Sequence record: OU343167.1
Reading direction: 5' to 3' (one strand)
DNA: 64,000 bases
Shown here: one piece after another, positions 780-29,468 of the stretch
Layout of the letters: each line of letters starts with the position of its first letter
How positions within the stretch are numbered: the stretch's first letter is position 1
The notes under the pieces: generated by a model
What the model was told of the DNA's origin: nothing
Seen by the model: the letters and a program-made list of their open reading frames with translations, nothing else
The model's database searches: none
Program-made: the position numbers and the translations under genes

Positions 780-2432
780 TTAAATCCTACTTTTCGGTTC
801 CCCAGTCATATACCGGAGAGTTAGATTAAGCGTGTGGATGTTGACACTGAATGCAAGACCACCACCAGCCTTGATATAAGCTAAACGAGATTTAAAGAAT
901 CGATCGGATTCTTCAATAGCCTCTTTAGAATACACGGCATTGAATGACACAGTGTCACCGTCGAAGTCCGCACCAAGAGGAGCAAGTATAGACGGGGAAA
1001 TAGACGTGGAGTCATGCCATTGCGCCGGTTCGTTAATAGTGATGATTGGATATTCTAATGCGATCTCAGCATTAGTATCTCGTTCCCAGTCCCAACCAAG
1101 TGGGTAGCGCATCTCACCTTTAACAGTTGTCTTCACGTACATCTTTACAGGAATAGAACTGTTATAGTTCTCAACAGGGTAACGAGTAACGAATGCGGAG
1201 TTTCTTTTCCACATAGGTAATCCGCTTAGGTAAATCAATTCAGCATAGGAAATAGGACGCACGAACTTCTTGTCGAGCTTCTTCGGCATTTCTTCAATAT
1301 CCCTAAAGATCTTGAAGTTTTGCTTGTCATCAAGATAGACCAATGCCAAATAATGTCCAGCGATCTCAATTGCACGAGAACGCTTTTCGATGACCTTTAG
1401 TTCACCAATAACACGTTCAAGACCTTCGGGAGTTCCCCATAGGTCCATCTCTTCGTTACTAATATTAACCCATTCCAGTTTCAATGTCTTCTTATTTATA
1501 AGCTCAACACGAGTAGAGAGACTATCGAAGACTTGACCGACAACACCATTGCGTAAATGGTAAATAGTCTTTGGTTTAACGGATACAGCTGCTTGATAAA
1601 TACCAATTACAGCATCTTTGAACTTAGGACGGTTTGGCTGATCAAGATCAGCAGCATTGGTATCAAGCGAACTAATAACGTTACGAGTACCATTAAATAC
1701 TCGACGAGATGCCCATTTCTGTTGAATATAACCACCCTTGCCAGATAATAGGTTTTCGTAATGGTTATAAATCGCAAGAGCAGTCAACTGCATCGAAGTA
1801 CGCTTACGATCATAAATACTCAGATCGTCATTAGGTCCGAAATATTCAGGAACACCATAAGACTGGTTAAGCAGATATCGATAGTGTTCGTTAACTTCGT
1901 CCATCGATACACGGCCATCAACATCAATCTCGGCCTCACGATATGCAGCTGGAATAACGAGCATGTTTTTGAATGTACAGTTTTTCATGTACTTCTTCAT
2001 CAACTCTACCCGTACTCGACGAATAGATGATTTAGTTTCACCGAAATCGATCTTCTTCCAGTTATCAAAGAAAAAGGCGTAACCGGTTTTACCTTCAAGC
2101 TCATTGGAACGTACGAAGTCTTTAGCAACTGGATCAAATACAGCGAATGATTTACCAAGAATGATCTCTTCGTAGAAAGCCTTTAGTTTAATAAGGTTAC
2201 GATAGATCACAGGGTGGATAATCTCAAGACCCATGTTGATATAACCGAATCGACCTTCACGTTCAGTAGAGCCTACTCGTCCGAAAATCTCTACGGAGAA
2301 TAAACCTTTCTCATGAAAGTTACCACCGGTACCTTCGAAGATCTCGTGGCTAGTTACTTGTCCCAACATCGAAAGCTGTGCTTGGGTCGGAATCAAAAGA
2401 TCAATGTTGAATGGGACTAGTGCCTTCTTCAT
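780..2432 (-). CDS. Virion RNA polymerase beta'-type catalytic subunit (phiKZ gp180-like)
   Basis: Catalytic LGADFDGD motif near the C-terminus, KGLFSVEIFG N-terminal motif, FVTRYP; 550-aa split beta' typical of phiKZ-like phages. Confidence 0.92.
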   Translation of the reverse strand: MKKALVPFNIDLLIPTQAQLSMLGQVTSHEIFEGTGGNFHEKGLFSVEIFGRVGSTEREGRFGYINMGLEIIHPVIYRNLIKLKAFYEEIILGKSFAVFDPVAKDFVRSNELEGKTGYAFFFDNWKKIDFGETKSSIRRVRVELMKKYMKNCTFKNMLVIPAAYREAEIDVDGRVSMDEVNEHYRYLLNQSYGVPEYFGPNDDLSIYDRKRTSMQLTALAIYNHYENLLSGKGGYIQQKWASRRVFNGTRNVISSLDTNAADLDQPNRPKFKDAVIGIYQAAVSVKPKTIYHLRNGVVGQVFDSLSTRVELINKKTLKLEWVNISNEEMDLWGTPEGLERVIGELKVIEKRSRAIEIAGHYLALVYLDDKQNFKIFRDIEEMPKKLDKKFVRPISYAELIYLSGLPMWKRNSAFVTRYPVENYNSSIPVKMYVKTTVKGEMRYPLGWDWERDTNAEIALEYPIITINEPAQWHDSTSISPSILAPLGADFDGDTVSFNAVYSKEAIEESDRFFKSRLAYIKAGGGLAFSVNIHTLNLTLRYMTGEPKSRI

Positions 2433-2499
2433 TTCAAATTTCCTCTTAGGGGTTACAAAAAGCTAAACGATATGATTGTTTATATCGATGGAGTTGACC

Positions 2500-5400
2500 A
2501 TGGCTACAAAAAAGACCAAGCTGCCAAAACCTGCTGGGATGAATGCCCAGAACAGAATTGGTGTACTTGACCTTAATGAGCTGGACGACCTGTTTGATGA
2601 TGTCGGTGAAACCACCAAACCTGGTGATCCAGTAACCGATTTCAAATCTGGTCTGAAAGAGGGCTTCCTCGGTGGATTGAAAACCAAAGACATCGTAAGG
2701 AATTTCTTACGAAGCGCAGCGCCTGATGGTTTCGCGCGTCTTTTTGGTGCCTATGATGATGTAATGGCTTCGGTAACCGATATCAAAGATACGGTCGAAA
2801 GAGTCAATGCATCCGACCTAGATTACCTTGGTCGTAAAGCACAGGATTATCTACCCCAGTTAAAAGATCGCATTCCAAATGCCTTATACGAAAATATCTC
2901 TGATACGCTCACCAGAAAGGTTGAACAATATCAGTACGAAGTGGATTCCCAAAGGGACCAAATCGCTATTCGTCGTCGTCGGCAAGAAAATGATGATGCA
3001 AATGTAATTAAAGCTGCTCTCGATCAGAATACGCTGGTAAGCAGAGAAAACTTCCAACGTAGTGAACAGGGTGCAGTTGCCCGCGCTGCCGTTGAAAGAG
3101 CAGAACGTGGAATTCGTGATAAAGTAAGTGCTGGACGCTTTGACTTTATGTCCCGTTCGATGGGGATGGCTGTAGATAGTCTAACTCGTCTTGTAGGATA
3201 TAACGAACAAGTTAATTATGGAATTCAACGTAAAGGCCTTGAACTTCAGTTCCGTACCTACATGGGTATTAGGGATCTTGTTAAAGTACAAGAAGCTAAT
3301 CTTGAATTGCAGAATAAGGCTTATGAAGCATTAGTTCGTAATACCGGCTTACCAGACTACAAGAAAGGCAATGTTGGCGATCTAACCAGTTTTGGTTCAG
3401 GTCGCGGCCGGGGCAACATGCTCGGACGCCTAGCTGGCGGAGCTGCACAGGGCCTTCATGGCTTCTTGGGTAGTTATGGTAACAAAGTAAACGAACGTGT
3501 TGCCAGCGGCCTGGGCGGACGTCTATCGGAGATCGTAGCCGGTCTACGCATGGGCGATATGGCTGGTTCATCCGTTTGGGATAATCGCTATAAGTTCGCT
3601 GGTCAAATCGCCGGTGAATACGGTGCCGATATCCTTAAATCGTCTATTGTTCCATGGGCAGGTCGTAAAGTTCGTCCGACTATGGAAAAACTATCCAACC
3701 GTTTTGGTGGACGCCATCATCAGGTAGGGTATGCCCTAGACAACGTTCCAGCATATCTACAAGAGTTCGTTAATAACTACCAAAACACTTATGGTTTCCG
3801 TGGCGTTATTCGTGATGCTATTATGCCATTCGTTCCTCAGTACCACATGAACGATCGTTTGGAAAACGGAAACTATCAAACAATTGATCAAGGCGCGGCC
3901 TTTAACCAATTGACGCAGCGTAGTATCGTTGAAGTCATCCCAGGTTACCTGTCTCGCCAGCTTCAAGAATTGCGAATGATTCGCACTGGTCGCGATGATA
4001 TCGAGCGTGAAGTATTCGATATTACAACTGGTCGATTCGAAGTTCAATCGCTGTCGGATGATCGTCTTCAGAAGAAGATTATTCCAGCAGCAGCAATTCG
4101 AAGTGCGAGTGGTGCCATTAATGACACATTGAACTTGATGGATGAAGAGGGTAAACTTTCTCCAGCTGCACGTAAGGCACTTGGTGAACGTATGCTTCGC
4201 GATGCGTCTACAAACCGTAGATTTGATCCAGAAGCTTACCTTAAATCCGGCGGTTATATGGATGGCTTGGATGCCACAACCACGGATGAAATTCAAAGGT
4301 TCTTTAAGAGTAAGTTCCAGTATGACGATAAAGGTAAAATGGCAGATAATGCTGAAAACCATCGTCTACGGGATGAATACTCTCGTGCCTTCCTTGACAT
4401 TCGTTCTGTAAGTCGTGACCCAGTTAAAGAAGTACATCGTCTTATTAATGCTGGTCAAACTGAACCTTTACGGATGCTCGGTATCATCATTACTGAACAA
4501 GGACAAGATAGGATAAACTATAACCGTATTTGGGAGATCATGCGCTCTGGCGTTACTGATACCAACCCATGGGTTAATGGTGACTATCAACCTGAAGCTT
4601 CTGGTGATATGAATGATAAGAACTTCTTTGGTCCTGCTTACCCAGGTGCAGCTAAAGCCAATGCGCTTAATGCAATGCGTCGTTTCCGAAATAAACATGC
4701 ACCACAAGAAGATCGAATCAAGAAAGAACTATCTCGCTACAGCCGTATTGCACAGGGGAAATTCCAGTACCTGAACAATAAGCACGGCGCCGGTATCCAT
4801 GACTTTGCTAACAACATGCGTAATGGCCAATTTGGTCCTTACGTTGCTGGTCTGCAAGGAGCTTGGAATGATGCGAATGTAATGGGTCAAGATCTCTATT
4901 CTAAGACACGTGCTAAGTTTGGAGAACACATGGATCAGTTCCAGAATGATCCAACCCAATATGCAATCGGTCAGAAAGATAAGATCATTGATGTGTTCAC
5001 AAAGTTTAATCCAAATGAACCCATCATTAAAGGTATTGATTTTGTTCAAGGTAACCTTGTTGACTTTAATACCAAAAAGATTATCGAATCTGTACACGAC
5101 ATTACCGGTAAGGTTGTTTCTACAACTGGCATGACGGTTCTAACAGCATCTGAAGTTGCACAAGGTCTGTTTGATAAGAAAGGAATGCGTCTTGAATTAC
5201 CTGCCTTCATGAGCAACGCAGCGGATAAAATCCGCGGTGCTTTAATGGGTGGACAAACGCCTCCTGCTCAACAGTTTGCTGAAGGTGAAAACGCACAGCA
5301 AAAACAAGCAGCTGAAGATGATAAGCACGACTGGTATTTGGATGGTGAGCAAGAACCCACTATCTCTGCTCGTGGTCTAAAGAACGGTGAATACTTCAAC

Positions 5401-8400
5401 GCAGATGGTGACCAGATTAATTCGATGCAAGACATCAAAGGTGATGTACTTGATAAGAATGGATCTATTATCGCAACTGCTAAGGAACTAGCTTCCGGTC
5501 TATGGTCGCGTGCTACTCGTAAACGTTGGCGTCTTACCAAGACAGGTCGGCGTCTAGCAAATGTAGCGGGTTGGGGTGCCAAGTTCATGGCAACGAATAC
5601 ATCTACCTTAGCGTGGAACGCACTGAAGTTTGGTGCTAAGACAGCGATCGGTATGGGTTCGGCCCTATTCAACTTCGCGATTGAAACTCAGAACGCTTAT
5701 TTACCTGGTGATGATGTACCTGTACTCGAACGAAGACTAGTTAATGCTGGTAAGTACTTCGATGATAAAGGTCGCGTCATTGAAAACTTTGGTGATGTGT
5801 ATGGCACGATCTTTAACGAGAGAGGCGAACCTGTAATAGAACCATCTCTGTATAAAGACCTTAAGAACTACGACGGTACCAAACATATCTTAGCTAAGAA
5901 TAAAGGTATCATCCGTAAGACTGTATGGCGTGGTATTCGCGCTGCTCGTTCGAAGTATATCGATGCTTCCATGAAGTACATGGGTTGGGCATTGAAGAAG
6001 ACGGGTAAGTTCTATGGAGGTGCAGCTAAGAAAGTGTTAGGTGGTTTCGCTAAAGCGGGTGGTAACGTTCTTGGACGTATCTTTGAACGCGTACCATACG
6101 AAGACTTCGAAACAACTGATCAAGTACTATTGGGTCGCATTCTTGAAACTCTTCAAGCACAAGTTCCAGAAAAGCTCCGGGCTGGTAGTTGGCAGGATAA
6201 AGCAGAAAAGGCCAAAGAAGGAGCTGCTGGCTTGATGGATAAATTGAAGGGTAAGGGAGATGGCGATACCGGTAAAGCTGAAAATAAAGTCCTGAAGGGA
6301 TTGTCAGATGGACTTAAAGGTATCTTCAGTAAACTTACCGGTACAGAAGGTGAAGAAGGCTCTGGTGCGTTCGACGTGCTGATGGGCGGTGGTATGAAAG
6401 GTGGCGCTAAAGGTCGTTTAATGGGCCTTGCTAAACGCGCAGTTCCTTGGATACTTGGTGGTACAGCTGCCGCAGTGGGTACAGGTGCTATGGCTTATGG
6501 TTATAGCAAAGATGGAATGGATGCAAAGCAGACAGGTATTCTGACTGCAATGAGTCTTAATCCACTTGGACAATTAACTGCTCGCTATATCCTGAAACCT
6601 ATCTTTGGTCAGATGAACGATCAAAGAGCAGAGTTCCGCCGACTCAGAATGCTACAGTACGGTATTACCGATCACGATCAACAACAGAAAGTTTCTGCAC
6701 TTGAAGATGCTTTTGATCGCGTAACCGAACGGACAGAAGAACCCGACTTTAATATCAGTGGAGTTGGTGGTAAGGCTATTCTTGATATTCTTGGCATCGA
6801 TGTTAAGAATGAAGTTCAAGTAATGCGTATGTCCCGCTGGTTGGAAATGCGTTTCCGTCCGGTCTTCTTGACTTGGGTTAAAGCACTAGCTAAACTCAAA
6901 AAGAATGAAGTCAAACTCGTTGACATTGATAGTAAGTTCCCTCAAGAATTGAAAGGACCATTAGTTAAAGCTGTTAAGATTTCTGTATCGGGTGATACAC
7001 CAATGCAGTATCGTGTTGACCCATTCTCCGAAGAAGGCGAATTGGAAGACACTATCCCAGCAGCTGATCAACTTTGGAAAGCTCTATACGTTCGTTATAA
7101 AGCGGGCGAGAAGAAAGATGATACGGTACCTGCTACAGCGGCTAATACCGAAGTAGCTACCAAAGCTCAGGATATCGCCAAGAAAGCGGCAGATACAGCA
7201 ACTGGTAAAACCGCACCGAGTCCAATGGATCCTACTAAGTCAGCAATGCCCTTGGCTGCTGCTAAGAAGGCTTTCCCTGGTCTGGGTGGTTCAACAGGTG
7301 CTCCAATCGTTGCGACTTCGGCAGCTACTACTAAGCTAACTGCACTCCAATCCATCCGGATGCGTGCCTACGGTTTGGAAGTACTGAGTTTCTACAACGT
7401 CTATCCTCTTCTCAATGCTGAAGCAATGGTATTCGATGGTCTATCTATTCAGGGCGGTGTTCCTGAATTCCGTGGTGACCTAGAATCGATCATGCAGGAA
7501 ACAGCACCGTTATTTGGTAAAGATATCGTTGGTAACGATGAGGATCGTTCTACCTATTACGATTGGTTCGTTGGTCGTTTCATGCCTGTTGCTCGTGCTT
7601 ACTACGGTGCAATGCGTAATTCGACTCAAGGAACAACCATTGCGAACATGGAATCTAAACTCAAACCCAGTGATGCTGTTATTGTGGGTAATGCCGTATT
7701 GGGCGTCACTAATTGGGACGGCTCTAGTGTATGGCAGGTTGATTCTATCTTCCCGATTAAGGGTAGCAAAGACGATCTCAAGAAAATGGCTGAAGCTGAT
7801 TTGGAACAATTGAAGAAAGATGCAAGCAAAGACATCATGTCTACGCCGACTCAATCTGCGGGTGACCAAGCAGCTGGAACACAAAACGCAGCCGCTGGTG
7901 GTAGCTTTGCCGAGAGGGCAATGGCTTCTATCTCGAATACTTGGGAGTCTGCTAAAGAAACAGTAAGTAACGCATGGAGTAATACCAAGGCAGCTGGCGC
8001 TAAAGCAATGGATTATGTATCCGACGCTGCGGCGAATACACAGTACAAACTTGGTATGGCTGGCGAGGTATCTGCAACAGGTCGTACATACGGAACCCTG
8101 ACAAAGGGTAACGGTGGAGCTTGGGAACAGATTCCATATCCGAAAGCCAATAAGTCTCGTCAAGCAGCTGCTGAAACATTCCAAGCAGTTGCAGCGATGG
8201 TCGGTATTCCAGTAGAACTTCTGTTCATCTTCGCATCGCTTGAGTCTGGTTTTGATTACACCGTCAAAGCTAAGACATCGTCTGCAACCGGATGGTTCCA
8301 GTTTATTAATAGTACCTGGGACGCAATGTTGGCGAAACATGGCTCCAAGTTCGGTATTCCTCCAGACGACGCCCAACGTAGTTTACGTGTTGATCCTCGG

Positions 8401-22178: not shown

Positions 22179-25100
22179 TCACCGCAAATATGCGGGAACA
22201 TTAGATTTGGGTTTAAGGGGTATCTCGAAATCAACTGTCGGAATCTCGATGTCGAATTTTTCGAATGCTTTCTGAAGAACACTATGGATTACTTTGTTCT
22301 CATCAAACTGTGTTTCATCACCATAGTCTTCCATTGCCTCTCCAATCTCAAATGGAGACTTGATACCCATAATCGCTTCTACTTGATCCTGACTCCATTT
22401 AAGAATATCAGCCGATCGGGTAGAGATATTTGGGATATCCCCAGTATCGAGAGAACACTGGTAAACAACAACTTGAGAATCTTGACCTAAACGATAAGCA
22501 CGAGATATAGCCTGTTCCAGAATATAAGCTCTGAATGGACTATTCAATAGAATCAAGGTATCTGCCATTGTCAGGCGAACAGCCGTCGATAGAGAAGCAT
22601 ATGTAGCATTGAGTGGATTTAGATCCTTACCCGAATCAAAGCGTTTAACGATTTCAGCCAGTTCATTAGTAGTCTTCCCATAAACGGCTAGTGGTTTCAT
22701 ACCTAGCTTAACACAATGTGCATCTGCTGCTTCCACTGCTTCAACAAAGCTAGTAAACATAATCGTCTTCTTGTGAGTAGATTCTGTAATACCAACCCAG
22801 TCGACATACGGGACCATTGCCACGTGGCACTCAATACGTTTACCACCTAACACACGTCCAAGACATTCACCTTGAATCTTAAGGTTAGTATATTTAATAA
22901 CCGATTTGATGTCTCTGAACTCATGGATGAATTGCTTTGGAAGGGAAGGTCCAAATACTAATTTCTCGTATTGGTTCGTTGCTTTAATTTCCTCTCCTGC
23001 AAAGCGTGGATCAGGGATCTGTTGAACATACTTGACCAGATCCAAGTACTCTTTGAAGGCTCTTTCCTGTGCGGCTGTTTTGAGGGTTTTTCGATGGAGT
23101 CCACAGAACTCTGCCCAGCGTTTATCATCTTCAGGTCTCCGCTTCTTGTAGTAAGCCCAGCGTTCTTGAATAAATGCTTCCATAACCTTTCTAATAGCCG
23201 GAAGGGTGAAGTCATCACCATTCGGAATTTTAATTGGATAAGGACGCATGATCGGGGGCTCTAGGTCGAGTTCTTGTTTCTCTACCTTGTAGGATACGAG
23301 ACCTAATCGATGTCTGATTATATCGAGTCCTTTAGATGCTTCTTTACCATACATCTTCTTGAAGCGTTCTTCTACCTGCGGAGTGAATAGAGGATCTACT
23401 ATTCGCAGTAAGTTAATCAGTTCAACACCCAATGCTTTTACAGGCGTGCCCGAAGCTAAAAGATTATTACGAGAACCGACCATCTTTACAATGAGTTGAT
23501 AAAGTTTAGTCCGTGTAGAGTTAGGGTCATTCATGTTGTGCGATTCATCTAGAATCGTCACAGTACGTTTGCTACCAACTATATTACGGTTTCTAAGAAG
23601 TTCTACTACCTTATCCATTGCATCGTAATGACAGACGATCCAACGCTGTCCTTTGTAGGGCATATTAGGTTCGAACGTATGCCAAACTGTTTGCGGCTTA
23701 TGGAACATCTCTTTCAGGGAATCTAACCAGACTAGATCCAAAGCATTCTTAGGACACATTACAACAATGAGTTCAGCATCAAGCATCTCGGCAATAGCTG
23801 AAGTAAGATATGTGTTATGTGTCACGACGAAATCATCGGTCACGTAAAGGTGATCGGGATGTTCAACCTGAATACATTGACACTCCACTCGATCCGACAG
23901 GTTAACATGTTTCACCTGTAAACGAAGATTATCCGCGTATTGGTTATTGTCGTTGCATCGAGCTATTTTGCGATCAAGGCGGAAAAGTGCACTGGGGGTA
24001 TCAAACCGGACAGCTACCCGATAAGACATGTTACCGTACTTCTTGACGCCGTTGTACGTGAATGTAGGCTCTTTGAACGCCAGTTTGGCAATTCCACCCA
24101 GGGAACGAACTAGGTACTGGAACTGCTTGGCTAACATGTAGCTGCAACTGGTGAAACTTAGGTTGCTATTCTCGTCAACTGTACCATCCGTGTCCATAAG
24201 ACCTTGTACAAGAGCCAATCGCTGGGCAGTAGAACCGAATAGGTATTCTTGCGGAATGAATTTAGAAAGGGAATTCGTTCCTAGCAAATTCATATCTCGA
24301 AGAGCACTGATATACGGGTTACGCTCACCTTTCTTGTTGATGACCCCCATGGTAATGGCGTCACGGGCGATAAGATTGAGGTTATCCGGGAGAGCTTTAC
24401 TGAACGTATCGAATAGTTGAGGGTCACCACTGGTAATGGTCACACAACTCGAACTGATCCCGCCATCGCCAAGAATAACCCCGAGGTTATACGGATCGAT
24501 CGGTAGATCGACATCCATACCTTCTTCGGACTTACAGAGTTGAACGTAAAGTCGATTCCGGTATGATTTCATAGACATGTAACCGAACAGGGTGGTGGTG
24601 TTGATTACTCGCCAACCATCACTACCGTCCCTCGTCCAATTATAGCAATAGACTCGCCATAGGTGCTCATCACATGCTTCGGTCGTGCGACCGTCTTTGA
24701 ATGTAACCGTAAAAGTTTGTTTCTTTCCTTGTGGGTAAACGCCGGTGACCTTAGTCGGGGTACCGTCCCAAGCAGTGACCATGTCACCAACTTGAATATC
24801 ACCCATACGTTTCCAGCCACCAGGAATTTTAACCATGGCGTTTAGTGGTTGTGCCTTACCCGTACCGGCGGCCGCGGCAATTAAGTCACCATTTAGATTG
24901 TATTGATCTAGCCGATATGTGTAGTTCTTGAAATACTCTAATTGATACGGTTTTGGATCAAATTTTAATCGAGACAGATTAGCTAGATTAAGTCGCCCTT
25001 GTACTGATTTCTCATCAATGGCTTTAGTAGAGGCAAGCCAAGTATTCTGTAAAAGCGCATCTTTAATAGCAGCGATCATTTTTACAGAGGTGTATCGAGA

Positions 25101-25334
25101 ACGGTAATAGACAATGTTTTCCAACATGTACATTACTTCAGGTGCAAAGAACTTATAGAAGCTTAATGAGTTCCGACCAATGTTGTTGAACAAGTTGGTT
25201 GTAATCTTGGAAGTCTTCCAATGCTTACTGATATCTCGGACTATGTCGAAGCCACGAATACCAGAGATGATAATCTCCGTTTCAGTTTCTTTGACTGTCA
25301 AGCCGCCAAATATCGAACGGAATGAGTCTAACAT
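22179..25334 (-). CDS. SNF2/RapA-family (SF2) helicase with intein (phiKZ gp203-like)
   Basis: Walker A AAAGTGK, split by the intein and resuming at TYL; Walker B ILDESH; motif III ASGTP; motif VI QAISRAYRLGQ. Confidence 0.9.
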   Translation of the reverse strand: MLDSFRSIFGGLTVKETETEIIISGIRGFDIVRDISKHWKTSKITTNLFNNIGRNSLSFYKFFAPEVMYMLENIVYYRSRYTSVKMIAAIKDALLQNTWLASTKAIDEKSVQGRLNLANLSRLKFDPKPYQLEYFKNYTYRLDQYNLNGDLIAAAAGTGKAQPLNAMVKIPGGWKRMGDIQVGDMVTAWDGTPTKVTGVYPQGKKQTFTVTFKDGRTTEACDEHLWRVYCYNWTRDGSDGWRVINTTTLFGYMSMKSYRNRLYVQLCKSEEGMDVDLPIDPYNLGVILGDGGISSSCVTITSGDPQLFDTFSKALPDNLNLIARDAITMGVINKKGERNPYISALRDMNLLGTNSLSKFIPQEYLFGSTAQRLALVQGLMDTDGTVDENSNLSFTSCSYMLAKQFQYLVRSLGGIAKLAFKEPTFTYNGVKKYGNMSYRVAVRFDTPSALFRLDRKIARCNDNNQYADNLRLQVKHVNLSDRVECQCIQVEHPDHLYVTDDFVVTHNTYLTSAIAEMLDAELIVVMCPKNALDLVWLDSLKEMFHKPQTVWHTFEPNMPYKGQRWIVCHYDAMDKVVELLRNRNIVGSKRTVTILDESHNMNDPNSTRTKLYQLIVKMVGSRNNLLASGTPVKALGVELINLLRIVDPLFTPQVEERFKKMYGKEASKGLDIIRHRLGLVSYKVEKQELDLEPPIMRPYPIKIPNGDDFTLPAIRKVMEAFIQERWAYYKKRRPEDDKRWAEFCGLHRKTLKTAAQERAFKEYLDLVKYVQQIPDPRFAGEEIKATNQYEKLVFGPSLPKQFIHEFRDIKSVIKYTNLKIQGECLGRVLGGKRIECHVAMVPYVDWVGITESTHKKTIMFTSFVEAVEAADAHCVKLGMKPLAVYGKTTNELAEIVKRFDSGKDLNPLNATYASLSTAVRLTMADTLILLNSPFRAYILEQAISRAYRLGQDSQVVVYQCSLDTGDIPNISTRSADILKWSQDQVEAIMGIKSPFEIGEAMEDYGDETQFDENKVIHSVLQKAFEKFDIEIPTVDFEIPLKPKSNVPAYLR
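23814..24854 (-). mobile_element. 347-aa class 3 intein with LAGLIDADG homing endonuclease
   Basis: Starts AQPLNAMV (Ala161) right after GTGK; block B DEHLW; block F VECQCIQV; ends VVTHN before Thr+1; LAGLIDADG motifs YNLGVILGDG and LVQGLMDTDG. Confidence 0.92.
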
Positions 25335-25409
25335 GTGGGTTTATCCTTAAGGGGTAAATTCATAGAATTGGCCTACGTGTAAGATTTAGAAAAAAGATTA
25401 CTAAAACAG

Positions 25410-25600
25410 TAATGATATAGTCAAGGCAGTCGCGCATAGCGCTGCACTTTAAGGGGGTGATCCAGCCGATTCTTTAACTTGATACGTTAAAGTATTTGCG
25501 GGAGCAAAGACGAGTATCTAACTACGGTGCCTTGACGACTATGTTTGGACTCTCTAATCTAAACAGACATATCGCCCGGCTCAATGCCGGGCTTTATGTT
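25410..25600 (+). ncRNA. Candidate structured non-coding RNA (unassigned family)
   Basis: 9-bp closing stem 25420-28/25528-36 encloses three hairpins, one with a GGGA GNRA loop; possible GATAC/GTATC pseudoknot; followed by a terminator-like hairpin with + strand T tract. Confidence 0.4.
25574..25597. terminator. Hairpin GCCCGGC-TCAAT-GCCGGGC-TTTAT
   Basis: 7-bp GC stem downstream of the minus-strand paralog cluster; T tract lies on the + strand. Confidence 0.7.
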
Positions 25601-25603
25601 GTC

Positions 25604-26557
25604 TCATCGAATCAAACGTAAAGCTGGATTGAATCCACGGCTACTACCATAAGCTGTAAAAGCATTGTCAAGCTGGTGAGCGATAGATGTGCTAAATCCA
25701 CGCTGGATACAACGGTTATCTTCAGTAACAGCTTTATAGAAAATATTCAAGCCATTACCTGGAGCTATAGACGATGGTAACTGATTACCATAACGACTGC
25801 GTTGATAACCAGAATACAACTGTCCAGTTGGGTTTACTGCTGTATTGAATAGACGTTCGAAGGTATCTAAAGCTAGATCATTCATCACATGGAGACTTAC
25901 CATCGCATCAGTAGCATTGGTGTATACTACCTTATCACCATGTGGGATACATCCAACAGCAAAACTATTACCATTCCTAGAATAGATCTTACCCTGCATT
26001 ACAGCTGGATTAGTGAGAGATGATGGCAAAGTACCAACACCGTCTTCTACCGTATCAAGGAGAACACCTGTCCTATAAACATCCATGAATGACATTCCAG
26101 AATATGGAACTCTGTTCGGAATGTAATACGTTACACCTTTGAACTGTATTTTCCATGCTTCTGTTGGTTGATCAACAGTATTCGTGAAGTTAGATGGTAA
26201 AGCCAAATTTGTTTTAAAATCAGCCACCTCAAAGACATCTTCGATTGGACATGTTCCGAAGTAGCCAATCCACCAGTCACCGAATACGGGAGTTTCGGGA
26301 CCAGGTCCTTTATTAGTGTAATCAATAATGCAAATAGCTTTTACATCACTCAATACGAAAGAACCTGTATTGTCCGTACCAATAACAAGATAGAAATAAG
26401 GTGTATCTTTCAAAGCAGTATCGTCTACAAATTCTCGATCAGTAACATCCAGCTGCTTAAAAACAGCTGGAAGATTATTCACATCAAATGGTTCTGTAGA
26501 ACGATAAGCTTTTAAGTCAACAATATCACCTGTAACCGAAAAGCCTACTTTAATCAT
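25604..26557 (-). CDS. Putative virion structural protein, paralog 4 of tandem family
   Basis: N-terminal FN3-like segment (YRS..PFD..NLP, D..A....YFY) then GPGP...G.W.IGYFG; C-terminal FNPALRL. Confidence 0.7.
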   Translation of the reverse strand: MIKVGFSVTGDIVDLKAYRSTEPFDVNNLPAVFKQLDVTDREFVDDTALKDTPYFYLVIGTDNTGSFVLSDVKAICIIDYTNKGPGPETPVFGDWWIGYFGTCPIEDVFEVADFKTNLALPSNFTNTVDQPTEAWKIQFKGVTYYIPNRVPYSGMSFMDVYRTGVLLDTVEDGVGTLPSSLTNPAVMQGKIYSRNGNSFAVGCIPHGDKVVYTNATDAMVSLHVMNDLALDTFERLFNTAVNPTGQLYSGYQRSRYGNQLPSSIAPGNGLNIFYKAVTEDNRCIQRGFSTSIAHQLDNAFTAYGSSRGFNPALRLIR

Positions 26558-26565
26558 CGAATCAC

Positions 26566-27516
26566 CTATAGCTCTAGTTCTAGAATTGGCATGAATGCAG
26601 CCGCGCTATTTACCAGAGTACTGGAAACGTTTATAAGCGCTGCACCTCTGACCAATATAGACTGGGTTTCACCTACGAATGTACGCGTCATGAAGATACC
26701 CGAACCAGGTGCGCCACCCGTCATTACAACGTTCGTTGAAGTCGAGTTAACGCGTGTTTTAAGGTTAGGCTTATTGATGTTCGATGCATATGCAATTAGA
26801 CGATCCCATGTGAGGCCAAGTAGATCATTAAACTGATCATAGACAGCCTGTCCAGCAGCTATACTTGCGAGTGATCGTTCACCAGCAAATGTAGGCAGGC
26901 CAACTCTGTAACTATGATTCTTAATAATGACAGTCTTACCTTGTTCGGTTGGCGTACCAACTACAGTCTTAACAGGAGCAGGAAGATCATCCCAATGATC
27001 TCCAGGTGTTGACCAAGCACAACCCGCATTATAGACATCGGCCCAACGTAGGTTATAAGCCACGTAGCGAATTGGCAGCATGAAAATGCGCCCATCTACA
27101 ACGAACTTATGCCAAATGAAATCCGTTACAGGTGGAATTCTAATATCAGTCAAAAGACTGAGTCCACAAAGATCTGTTATTTCACCAGGTAATACAAAAT
27201 CTGGAACCTCACCAAAATAACCTAATTCATAGTCTCCAGAACGAAGGGTATTTGGTCCGAAACCAGTGTAAGGCATGTTAGCAAGTGCAACCACTTTGGA
27301 ATAGGTTACATCACCATTCTCAAAATTAGAACCGATGCAGTAATAGTAGACTTTATTTCTAATAGCTGTTGTATCATCGTACTCTTTGATGTTTCCTTGC
27401 ACATTAACTAATACACTAGGTAATGTCGATTCATCGAATTTTGTTTCAGATCGAAAAATATCAAATGTGACTGCTTCTCGATCATTGGTCAAACCCCATT
27501 GTACTTTAATACCCAT
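26566..27516 (-). CDS. Putative virion structural protein, paralog 3
   Basis: IKVQW..FDIFRSETKFDESTLP..YYY; GFGPNTLRSGDYELGYFGEV; C-terminal FMPILEL. Confidence 0.7.
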   Translation of the reverse strand: MGIKVQWGLTNDREAVTFDIFRSETKFDESTLPSVLVNVQGNIKEYDDTTAIRNKVYYYCIGSNFENGDVTYSKVVALANMPYTGFGPNTLRSGDYELGYFGEVPDFVLPGEITDLCGLSLLTDIRIPPVTDFIWHKFVVDGRIFMLPIRYVAYNLRWADVYNAGCAWSTPGDHWDDLPAPVKTVVGTPTEQGKTVIIKNHSYRVGLPTFAGERSLASIAAGQAVYDQFNDLLGLTWDRLIAYASNINKPNLKTRVNSTSTNVVMTGGAPGSGIFMTRTFVGETQSILVRGAALINVSSTLVNSAAAFMPILELEL

Positions 27517-27518
27517 GA

Positions 27519-28505
27519 TTACACCTCAAAGTCAACGAAGTTACCAGGGATAAGTTCCAGTACAGGGAACCAAATGTTTGAACTTGAGGTTCTACCTGTA
27601 TGTTGAGGTACAAAAGCCGAAGCTTTCGTTGCACTCGTATTTCGCGAAATATATGCAGAAGCTGGAGTGGTTGGAGTATCTCGTGTTAGAATAGCTTTAC
27701 TATTAACACGTGTAGCCTCATTATCACCGGTTACGTTAACTCGTTCCAATGTTTTATTAGCATAGAACTGACTAGTCATACCGGCTAAAAATAACTCGAC
27801 GGTACCATTACTGAGAGATGGGTCAGAATTACCTAATGCAGTCGCTGCGGATGACGATAGATCACTAACAGAATTAGGATCATCGTGATCAACTAGAACG
27901 GAAGGCAAAGATACTTCAAATTCAGATAGAGCAAAATTGATTCGCTTGCCCTGAGGAACAGGAGTAGTAACACCGGGGACAGCGGATGGTACTGCGTTCT
28001 TACTGTACACTAGACCCGCATTATAGAGGTCCATCCAGTTCAGAGTACCAGTTGCGATGGAATATTCAGGTACATAGAAAGTCCGTCCTTTCCATGCGAA
28101 TTTATGCCAACGTTGACCAGCATTATTAGCTGCGTTCCAGGACAAACCACAACGAGCGATTAGTTCACTGTCCGAAATAAATTCAACAGTGGGAAGAGAA
28201 CCGTAGTAACCATAATTGATGTTACCTGCAACTAAGCGCTGTGGACCAGGTCCAGTGAAAGGTACCGCATGGAACTGGAATACACGAGATTTAGCTACAT
28301 CCCCATCTTTCGATGATTCAAACATGTAGTAGTAAATAAGTCCATATGTAAGCCCTTCGTCAGCATAACCATCAACGTCACCATTGACTTCTGCAATTGG
28401 TGTACCAGGGTTGTTTCTATCAATCATTGTTGCCGATCGATAAATTTTAATACTTACGGACGCGTCGTTTGGGTTTACCCAACGTAGATTGATTGTAAAT
28501 GCCAT
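27519..28505 (-). CDS. Putative virion structural protein, paralog 2
   Basis: INLRW..IKIYRS..YYY; GPGPQRLVAGNINYGYYG; WHKFAWKG; C-terminal WFPVLEL. Confidence 0.7.
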   Translation of the reverse strand: MAFTINLRWVNPNDASVSIKIYRSATMIDRNNPGTPIAEVNGDVDGYADEGLTYGLIYYYMFESSKDGDVAKSRVFQFHAVPFTGPGPQRLVAGNINYGYYGSLPTVEFISDSELIARCGLSWNAANNAGQRWHKFAWKGRTFYVPEYSIATGTLNWMDLYNAGLVYSKNAVPSAVPGVTTPVPQGKRINFALSEFEVSLPSVLVDHDDPNSVSDLSSSAATALGNSDPSLSNGTVELFLAGMTSQFYANKTLERVNVTGDNEATRVNSKAILTRDTPTTPASAYISRNTSATKASAFVPQHTGRTSSSNIWFPVLELIPGNFVDFEV

Positions 28506-28517
28506 GTTAAATCATCC

Positions 28518-29468
28518 TCATGTGAAACTAAAGCTATTAATTCTAACTTCAGCTGTTTTATCTATCTTTCGCGATATACTGTTCAAGTCGATAAGCGTTT
28601 CATCTTGTGGGGCATTGCTAATATAAGCAATACTTACAGGAGTTGGTAGTGAAGTAAGCTGAATAATAGGTTGAATTCCACCAGAGCTGATTTCTGTATT
28701 AGTTATAATACTAGCTTCAGCTAAATTACTGTAAGCATTAATAGTCGTTTCTATTGGTACTAGGTGATATTCATCTTTAGGAATCAGCTCTAATACCGGC
28801 CGCCAAATACCATTATTCATTGGGGCATTATTATTTACAGACGTGATACTTGTGTTGTAAAACTGATACATTGGGCGCTGGGCTGTATTCAATGCCTTTG
28901 TCCATGTACCGTTACCAAGACCGATAACACTTGTGGGTCTATTGTCCCAAGACCCATTAGTCACTCGTGTAAATACCTGACCAAGTTCACTTGTTGGGTC
29001 TTCATTATTAGTTGGAGTGAATGGGTTCTCAGTTAGATGACCCATACGGATTCTAAACTGCCAGCTCCCTTCATCGTCAGTAAAATGATAGAACTTATCT
29101 TGAACGGTATTATATCCACTTGGAATATTTTGACCAATCGTGTTGTCTCCAAATACAAGGCCTTTGTCGTAAAGAACCTTCCATGAGACGTTGGTCATGT
29201 AGATAGATAAAGGTGCAAAACAAACCTTACCCATCCAGAAATATTTAACCCATTGTTGATTAGCGAATGAACCTACAATAGAGTTGGTATAGTCGGCTAT
29301 ATCTGCCTGTTCGATAAATCGTTCACGAAAATAAATATCTTTCGAATCGACTAGACCGAAATACCCAAGTGTCTCATTACCCTTTATTAGGAATTTACTT
29401 CCTGGTCCAGAAAATGGATACTCTATAGCTTGCTTCTTTTGACTCAATGATAACAGCACTTCAAACAT
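28518..29468 (-). CDS. Putative virion structural protein, paralog 1 (no N-terminal FN3-like part)
   Basis: SGPGSKFLIKGNETLGYFG; WVKYFWMG; WRPVLEL followed by an extra C-terminal segment. Confidence 0.7.
   Translation of the reverse strand: MFEVLLSLSQKKQAIEYPFSGPGSKFLIKGNETLGYFGLVDSKDIYFRERFIEQADIADYTNSIVGSFANQQWVKYFWMGKVCFAPLSIYMTNVSWKVLYDKGLVFGDNTIGQNIPSGYNTVQDKFYHFTDDEGSWQFRIRMGHLTENPFTPTNNEDPTSELGQVFTRVTNGSWDNRPTSVIGLGNGTWTKALNTAQRPMYQFYNTSITSVNNNAPMNNGIWRPVLELIPKDEYHLVPIETTINAYSNLAEASIITNTEISSGGIQPIIQLTSLPTPVSIAYISNAPQDETLIDLNSISRKIDKTAEVRINSFSFT

Follow-up and report, generated by a model that had tools for sequence, protein, structure and literature searches.

A conserved small RNA gene of phiKZ-like Pseudomonas jumbo phages with an invariant complement to the 16S rRNA 3' end

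The DNA analyzed here (the window) is a stretch of 64,000 nucleotides (nt) from sequence record OU343167.1, which matches Pseudomonas phage vB_PaeM_phiLBG22 (PA1C/PS119XW/BRkr group) at 100% identity. Its gap at 25335-25603, free of open reading frames (ORFs), contains a free-standing, structured and conserved + strand gene for a small non-coding RNA (ncRNA), shared by phiKZ-like Pseudomonas jumbo phages. The RNA is expressed in phiKZ and defines a new RNA family whose striking link to the ribosome can be put to the test. Its only invariant stretch, hereafter the box, is complementary to the 3' end of 16S ribosomal RNA (rRNA) and, judging from this complementarity, probably base-pairs with the anti-Shine-Dalgarno (anti-SD) tail of 30S subunits. 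An earlier note on this DNA, which proposed a folded RNA in the gap, had missed this main feature.

Work on phiKZ-like phages has centered on the protein nucleus and on proteins acting on host ribosomes. A conserved RNA that is invariant only where it complements the 16S tail offers a testable handle on how these phages steer translation. If our reading is true, this would be the first phage RNA to target rRNA directly.

A structured RNA gene conserved between phage genera and transcribed in phiKZ

Using the gap alone as a query, blastn found intergenic matches of 70-81% identity in phiKZ, PhiPA3, and 201phi2-1, which belong to other genera. A covariance model (R1), which gives the window 112.7 bits (E 3e-30), recovered divergent copies that blastn had missed, in D6 (49 bits) and Psa21 (48 bits), and also matched Phabio (29 bits) and pPa_SNUABM_DT01 (DT01; 28.5 bits). 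Four members on metagenome contigs (L009, L010, L012, and L013) came from scanning viral contigs with a pattern. Altogether, 14 homologues fit one covariance model; their sources are Pseudomonas phages (phiKZ, PhiPA3, 201phi2-1, Viktualia, Psa21, D6, Phabio, and DT01) and the four metagenome contigs, with HPP-Temi falling in the clade of the window. The 15th, in Noxifer, was found by a scan for the box pattern and read by eye; R1 gave no match there. Outside this set, the R1 search returned nothing in the EL-like phage HHBS8_1, in OBP or in Erwinia phage Deimos-Minion, and the box-pattern scan of these three gave only coding-looking near-matches. The same scan found none in Ralstonia RP31, Klebsiella Centimanus, Vibrio Yong XC32, and Stenotrophomonas BUCTxx100, which like Deimos-Minion are chimalliviruses, at a sensitivity too low for proof of absence.

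The transcript is predicted to span 25419-25600 (end approximate), about 181 nt up to the terminator, with its 5' end placed from phiKZ. Its closing helix, P1, pairs GUCAAGGCA (GTCAAGGCA) at 25420-25428 with UGCCUUGAC (TGCCTTGAC) at 25528-25536 and closes a three-way junction that bears P2 and a P3-P4 arm with a GNRA end, the box lying in the helix-free stretch between P2 and P3. The P2 hairpin (25429-25445) has outer G-C and U.G pairs, an inner GCGC/GCGC stem and an AUA loop. P3 joins GAUAC (25481-25485) to GUAUC (25514-25518) and encloses the P4 hairpin (25492-25511), in which an internal loop separates 2 bp from 5 bp and the GNRA tetraloop GGGA (25500-25503) caps the stem. The conserved, single-stranded junction UAACUACGG follows at 25519-25527; its AACTACG is invariant in 10 homologues and CUACG is retained in D6 and Psa21. 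Beyond P1 stands the P5 hairpin UGUUUGGA/UCUAAACA (25542-25565), whose sequence differs among phages and whose position is occupied by a hairpin in all nine minimum-free-energy folds (9/9). An additional hairpin, CUUUAAC/GUUAAAG (25472-25492), has an H-type pseudoknot topology with P3.

Our covariation analysis showed that this architecture is conserved. In a model-based alignment of 14 sequences, 85% of the cells pair, and 20 of the 27 base pairs display changes on both sides, compared to 11.0 +/- 1.9 in shuffled alignments. None of 500 shuffles matched this count and slid controls gave at most 10; an earlier count had been run on a 10-sequence version of the alignment. Likewise, the covariation score was 0.488 versus 0.171 +/- 0.018 for the shuffles (0/500 reached it) and at most 0.109 for the slid controls. 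Changes on both sides affect 5/5 pairs of P3 (helix 4 of the model), with 97% of cells paired, and 7/7 pairs of P4 (helices 5 and 6), while P2 (helix 3) is 91-98% paired and has one pair that switches between U-A and C-G. Compensatory changes in P1 convert it to AGCAAGGCA/UGCCUUGCU in phiKZ, GACGAGGUA/UACCUUGUC in L010 and AAGAAGCA/UGCUUCUU in L012 and L013; read by eye, GGCA/UGCC becomes GGUA/UACC in L010 and AGCA/UGCU in L012 and L013. A first attempt with MAFFT and RNAalifold misaligned P1 and P2 and so recovered the structure only in part; the model-based alignment superseded it.

Most of the folding proposed in the earlier note agrees with these results. A check of the sequence located the closing stem (25420-25428/25528-25536), a GC-rich hairpin (25426-25445), the CTTTAAC/GTTAAAG hairpin (25472-25492) and TTTGC-GGGA-GCAAA (25495-25508) where they had been described, and the closing, GC-rich and GNRA stems correspond to P1, P2, and P4, which are maintained by compensatory changes. 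The pairing of GATAC with GTATC, put forward as a pseudoknot, is real as P3 and maintained in the same way, and the further hairpin (about 25542-25565) and the terminator-like stem with a T tract (25574-25592, TTTATG) are both present. As for the "perfect" CTTTAAC/GTTAAAG hairpin, it exists in the window but is restricted to the window, HPP-Temi and PhiPA3, shows no covariation and is missing in phiKZ and in the 201phi2-1 clade.

Signals for transcription flank the fold. Upstream, at 25392-25418 (+), the promoter contains an AAAnnTAC box, AAAAGATTAC, which ends at 25401, 18 nt before the start, and is followed by the conserved AATGATAT. The 11 homologue promoters that were read share this arrangement, with AAAnnTAC, about nine variable bases and AATGATATAG. 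In published phiKZ middle promoters (P082, P098, P114, P116, and P124 were compared), TAC stands 18-21 nt upstream of the transcription start site (TSS), and the window has an AAAnnTAC of the same type at this distance. From this spacing, the start was predicted at the A of TATAG, window position 25419. Downstream, at 25566-25602 (+), lies an intrinsic terminator of the phiKZ type, with a GC hairpin at 25574-25592 flanked by GACAUA/UAUGUU and followed by CTTTATGTTGT (TTTATG). The published phiKZ terminator motif is ...GGBYTTATKYYGT (PMC10914365), and the window indeed has a GC-rich hairpin followed by YTTATKYYGT. This + strand terminator is kept in the nine aligned elements and in Viktualia, D6, Psa21, and Noxifer.

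Several features thus carry meaning on the + strand only and identify it as the functional one: the promoter, the terminator, the P4 loops (GGGA, GAGA, GUGA or GCGA), which are GNRA loops when read on this strand, and the invariant U.G pair of P2, whose counterpart on the opposite strand would read A.C.

We mapped onto the element four RNA runs with the phiKZ version, which were available as contigs, so that only positions are informative. In the phiKZ Nanopore cDNA run X13, the strand-switch adaptor, which we take to be the reverse complement of the kit's strand-switching primer, joins at the A of TATAG (212853), exactly the predicted base. Three contigs carry adaptor-tagged 5' ends, and a single 3' end tagged with poly(A) lies 150 nt downstream, the tail beginning directly after the equivalent of the P5 hairpin. 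These end tags assign the RNA to the equivalent of the window's + strand. As a control, an adaptor-tagged 5' end of the same run falls exactly at the published TSS of the helicase gene. An Illumina RNA run contains a separate 210-nt contig over the element, with holes on either side. The 3' end agrees with the published phiKZ transcription termination site (TTS) T095 (+) at 213001 (Putzeys et al., supplement). Contig depths in these runs are 2,400-7,500 over the RNA and 20-210 beside it, which hints at high abundance, but such a per-contig figure is no measure of expression and was not used. The + strand small RNA suggested in the earlier note is therefore borne out by the covariation, the GNRA loops, the G.U pairs, the promoter and terminator and the cDNA ends, and it is seen in phiKZ as an RNA of about 150 nt.

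The box and its complementarity to the 16S rRNA tail

The RNA has a single long invariant stretch, AGG(G/A)GGUGAUCCA. It belongs to the stretch UAAGGGGGUGAUCCAGCCG between P2 and P3, which includes GGUGAUCC and complements the final 19 nt of the host 16S rRNA, that is, the anti-SD tail and the adjoining strand of helix 45. In the window, the box UUAAGGGGGUGAUCCAGCCG (25449-25468, +) forms a contiguous 20-nt complement, with one G.U, to the 16S end ...CGGCUGGAUCACCUCCUUA-3' and the first base of the spacer. The core AGGRGGUGAUCCA is unchanged in 15/15 homologues.

Pseudomonas 16S rRNA 3' ends were taken from genomes by pattern, and all of the nine aligned elements (nine/nine) turned out to contain 17-22 contiguous nt complementary to the exact end. 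This match is the longest complementary run in the 8-kb rrn locus, and the minus strands of the elements give only scattered matches of 12-16 nt. The predicted duplex between box and 16S rRNA amounts to -38.2 kcal/mol in the window and to -30 to -38 kcal/mol in 14 homologues. The aligned elements have a G.U opposite the U of CCUCC, whereas D6, Psa21, Phabio, and Noxifer have an A instead, which makes the duplex perfectly Watson-Crick. Other variable positions are A/G opposite U1541 and C/U opposite G1526. This pattern indicates that the changes accepted by the box are mostly transitions under which it can still pair with 16S rRNA. A CACUUU/GGGGUG hairpin that would mask the box was dropped, as it is not conserved.

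The likeness to 16S rRNA extends beyond the box. The CUACGG of the junction is complementary to the 5' strand of helix 45 (CCGUAG), and from CUACG(G) through the 3' strand of P1 the RNA is colinear, in every lineage, with the reverse complement of 16S positions ~1493-1514, the P1 strand falling on the reverse complement of ACAAGGUA. Taken alone, the colinear alignment reaches significance (z 3.1-5.1) in the window, HPP-Temi, L010, phiKZ, and D6. By sequence, the RNA resembles an antisense copy of the final ~50 nt of 16S rRNA, with the P3-P4 arm taking the place of the helix 45 loop. This likeness may be a record of the origin of the RNA, or may reflect an ability to engage both strands of helix 45. 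The converse idea, with P2 as a copy of helix 45 in sense orientation, was too weak to claim.

Mode of action and alternative explanations

In the mechanism we propose, the non-virion RNA polymerase of the phage would start the RNA at the middle-type promoter, and transcription would end at the hairpin-TTAT terminator, or else the RNA would be trimmed after P5. The box would behave as a very long Shine-Dalgarno (SD) sequence without an ORF and would dock the RNA on the 16S tail, either in free 30S subunits or in immature 16S rRNA. Once docked, the RNA could compete with mRNAs for the anti-SD, or tether or mark ribosomes, in the middle phase of infection. A small RNA gene whose box docks on the 16S tail of 30S subunits or of immature 16S is the overall explanation that we favor, with modest confidence. 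We are more doubtful of a stronger version, in which an abundant RNA would both pair with the anti-SD tail and invade helix 45 with CUACGG, so that 30S subunits or immature 16S would be captured, reprogrammed or tethered. If true, it would be a virus-encoded, trans-acting RNA that targets rRNA, a mode of ribosome take-over undescribed for any phage.

Several points weigh against docking on the ribosome, or against the evidence assembled for it. In predicted ensembles the box is only about half open, with a mean P(unpaired) of ~0.45, and pairing past G1530 would need opening of helix 45 base in the mature 30S. Most homologues keep a G where an A would give a Watson-Crick pair, which hints at a further constraint on the box. 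The phage's own ORFs use SD sequences (43% at -6 kcal/mol or better versus 5% of internal controls), so a simple global block of the anti-SD would harm the phage too. Synthesis of the RNA takes place in the phage nucleus, from which it would have to be exported before it could meet ribosomes. The transcript is seen in phiKZ only, its expression in the phage of the window being inferred from conservation, and the phiKZ ONT-cappable-seq tables of Putzeys et al. list no TSS or ncRNA at this place, despite T095. Finally, the alignments used for counting pairs were fitted to the model and are hence biased towards the structure; the support for it nevertheless reaches beyond the model-fitted alignment, since the slid controls and the P1 compensations read by eye agree with it.

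The phiKZ Grad-seq study sought phage ncRNAs by their non-ribosomal sedimentation, a criterion that an RNA traveling with 30S subunits would escape; its supplements make no mention of this phiKZ place.

A possible but unlikely alternative is that the small RNA is real while its box binds a phage or host protein, or another RNA, and the match to 16S rRNA is a relic of an antisense copy of an rRNA gene. The colinear alignment with the reverse complement of 16S in every lineage fits descent from rDNA, and the G kept by most homologues in place of a better-pairing A points the same way. However, a relic should decay, yet the box stayed invariant while the surrounding helices turned over by compensation, and the substitutions it did accept mostly preserve the pairing with 16S rRNA. 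As for another RNA, no alternative partner of the box was found in phiKZ or anywhere in the phiLBG22 genome, the window included.

Docking of the RNA in trans on 16S rRNA also has to be set against a role in cis. The earlier note had envisaged a structured leader of the intein-containing helicase, and one could more generally imagine a leader, attenuator or riboswitch for this gene or another neighbor. The element adjoins the helicase gene in the window, phiKZ, PhiPA3, D6, and Psa21, and many short RNAs of phiKZ-like phages derive from 5' untranslated regions (UTRs). However, in the window and in phiKZ the RNA is transcribed away from the helicase gene, the two starts lying 58 bp apart without overlap, and the gene downstream in the window is convergent. 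The element stands between the helicase gene gp203 (-) and gp204 (+) in phiKZ, and between gp232 (+) and the helicase gene (+) in PhiPA3, where it is inverted relative to the helicase. Four annotated genes separate the two in 201phi2-1, other genes intervene in Viktualia too, and the DT01 homologue, which has a reduced P2 (record positions 229896-230019), is, unlike those of the other phages, ~28 kb away from the helicase gene (258.5-260.7 kb). Between the RNA and the next gene there always stand the RNA's own terminator and a new promoter, and no riboswitch family matches the element. As it keeps its own orientation while its neighbors change, the element is a gene of its own and not a leader, and we consider regulation in cis very unlikely.

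Alternatively, the box could serve as an extra-long SD for a micropeptide, making the RNA a tiny mRNA. There is a precedent in Bradyrhizobium, where a small mRNA with a 17-nt SD is bound to ribosomes (PMC5711450), and small coding sequences (CDSs) have been annotated over the element in Viktualia, HPP-Temi, and HHBS36_1. We searched for a conserved ORF behind the box across the homologues and found none, nor any start codon at a conserved, workable distance (4-12 nt) or any shared frame. The called ORFs vary in frame and place, the AUG of the Viktualia ORF sits in P1 and occurs only in the 201phi2-1 clade, and substitutions track the pairing of helices and not codon positions. We therefore give this possibility hardly any credence. 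The CDSs that overlie the RNA gene are CDS0187-0189 in HPP-Temi (1487-1905 of its extract) and CDS0006 in Viktualia (1510-1599), together with that of HHBS36_1; as their frames are not common to the phages, these "hypothetical proteins" are probably mis-calls.

It is equally improbable that the minus strand is the functional one, mimicking the 16S 3' tail (GGCUGGAUCACCCCCUUA) and soaking up SD sequences or factors that bind the tail. The + strand of the gap folds at -83.3 kcal/mol, compared to -65.6 +/- 5.0 kcal/mol for dinucleotide shuffles (z -3.53), and the minus strand also beats its dinucleotide shuffles (z -3.93), so the folding energy exceeds that of shuffled sequences on both strands. 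Read-through from the upstream minus-strand gene would moreover yield such an RNA in the window. But this gene is present only in the clade of the window, the phiKZ cDNA ends belong to the opposite strand, and the GNRA loops, the invariant U.G, the promoter and the terminator are all on the + strand.

A self-cleaving ribozyme, or an element acting as DNA (promoter hub or origin), would fit the multibranch fold, the pseudoknot-like topology in the window's clade and the back-to-back promoters at the 5' edge, and is just as implausible, given that no Rfam ribozyme matches even at E <=10, that the element yields a defined RNA of ~150 nt with adaptor-tagged ends, and that changes preserving helices would not be expected of a DNA site. 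The "ribozyme-like element or switch" of the earlier note thus found no counterpart among ribozyme or riboswitch families. With Rfam 15 at gathering scores, no family (ribozymes, riboswitches, sRNAs or rRNA fragments) matched anywhere in the window; at E <=10, the sole matches in region 25200-25750 were to Hrs12 (16.5 bits, cut-off 70) and to PrrF (14.5 bits, cut-off 90), both below threshold and carried by the terminator hairpin. A scan of the window DNA for tRNA and tmRNA found none.

Related systems and neighboring genes

Small RNAs (sRNAs) have been reported in phiKZ-like phages by ONT-cappable-seq and Grad-seq, namely 5'UTR_gp40, 3'UTR_PHIKZ298, an RNA upstream of gp182 and sRNA005 of 201phi2-1 (PMC10914365, PMC8545117, PMC11512511). 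Like the RNA described here, they are phage-encoded, structured, 70-200 nt long and conserved between jumbo-phage genera, with phiKZ-type promoters and hairpin-TTAT terminators at their ends. Unlike it, they derive from UTRs, are tied to one gene and have no reported complement to rRNA, whereas ours is a free-standing gene. Our search of the phiKZ-phage literature on small RNAs and ribosomes found no description of this RNA, although one of the three intergenic sRNAs of 201phi2-1 may correspond to it.

The small mRNA of Bradyrhizobium, with its 17-nt SD, is found in the ribosome fraction (PMC5711450) and shares with this RNA a long purine-rich complement of the 16S 3' tail. The phage RNA differs in having no conserved ORF, in its three-way junction, in its reach into helix 45 and in being viral. 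In Haloferax, a Val-tRNA fragment binds the small subunit and displaces mRNA (PMC5711459, PMC11009984). An ncRNA that acts in trans on the small subunit in competition with mRNA is analogous to the mode that we propose; in contrast to our viral RNA, the fragment is cellular, derived from tRNA and bound at the decoding site, with no anti-SD pairing.

Among viruses, the calicivirus termination upstream ribosomal binding site (TURBS) motif and the contacts of internal ribosome entry sites (IRESs) with 18S rRNA are cis elements that tether ribosomes by rRNA complementarity. The likeness is that a virus holds ribosomes through pairing with small-subunit rRNA. TURBS and IRESs are, however, parts of eukaryotic viral mRNAs that act in cis, whereas here a bacterial virus encodes a separate, non-coding RNA. 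Large phages also encode the ribosomal protein bS21, which is aimed at the 30S platform and anti-SD region. It resembles our RNA as a phage product directed at the anti-SD region of the 30S, but is a protein and not an RNA, and no homology is implied.

Recognition of this gene would add an RNA family to the databases and correct the annotation of the tiny "hypothetical proteins" placed over it. The phages are tractable with antisense oligomers (PMC12571901), which, together with the shortness of the box, makes quick testing possible.

A possible counterpart outside Pseudomonas phages was noticed in the Escherichia phage Goslar (NC_048170.1), where the 213-nt intergenic gap between gp077 and gp076 (87200-87412, -) contains AGGAGGTGATCC. 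This gap is without a start codon at a workable distance and ends in a phiKZ-type terminator, a hairpin followed by CTTTATGCCG. It may represent a remote analogue of the RNA, carried by a chimallivirus of E. coli.

The gap of the window is bordered by two minus-strand ORFs, 22179-25334, which encodes an intein-bearing SNF2 helicase, and 25604-26557 (317 aa). The 5' UTR of the helicase mRNA (25335-25361, -), with the SD AAGGA, belongs to this neighbor and not to the RNA gene. Its predicted start, TCTATG at about 25361 (-), is that of a late promoter which aligns with the phiKZ late promoter P107, whose TSS is at 212808(-) (Putzeys et al., supplement of 10.1101/2023.10.13.562163). This late promoter (-) and the middle promoter of the small RNA (+) stand back-to-back, with starts 58 bp apart and overlapping upstream regions (25361-25419), so that the two could vie for one polymerase. 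The RNA and helicase genes are co-directional in PhiPA3 (1498-1740 of its extract) and divergent in the window, phiKZ, D6, and Psa21, a difference that implies an inversion breakpoint within the ~60 bp between the two promoters.

On the other side of the gap, 25604-29468 is taken up by four successive minus-strand ORFs that hardly differ in length (317, 316, 328, and 316 aa); in phiKZ this place is occupied by gp204 and subsequent genes. The first is annotated as a putative virion structural protein in PA1C, and the four look like a tandem array of paralogues.

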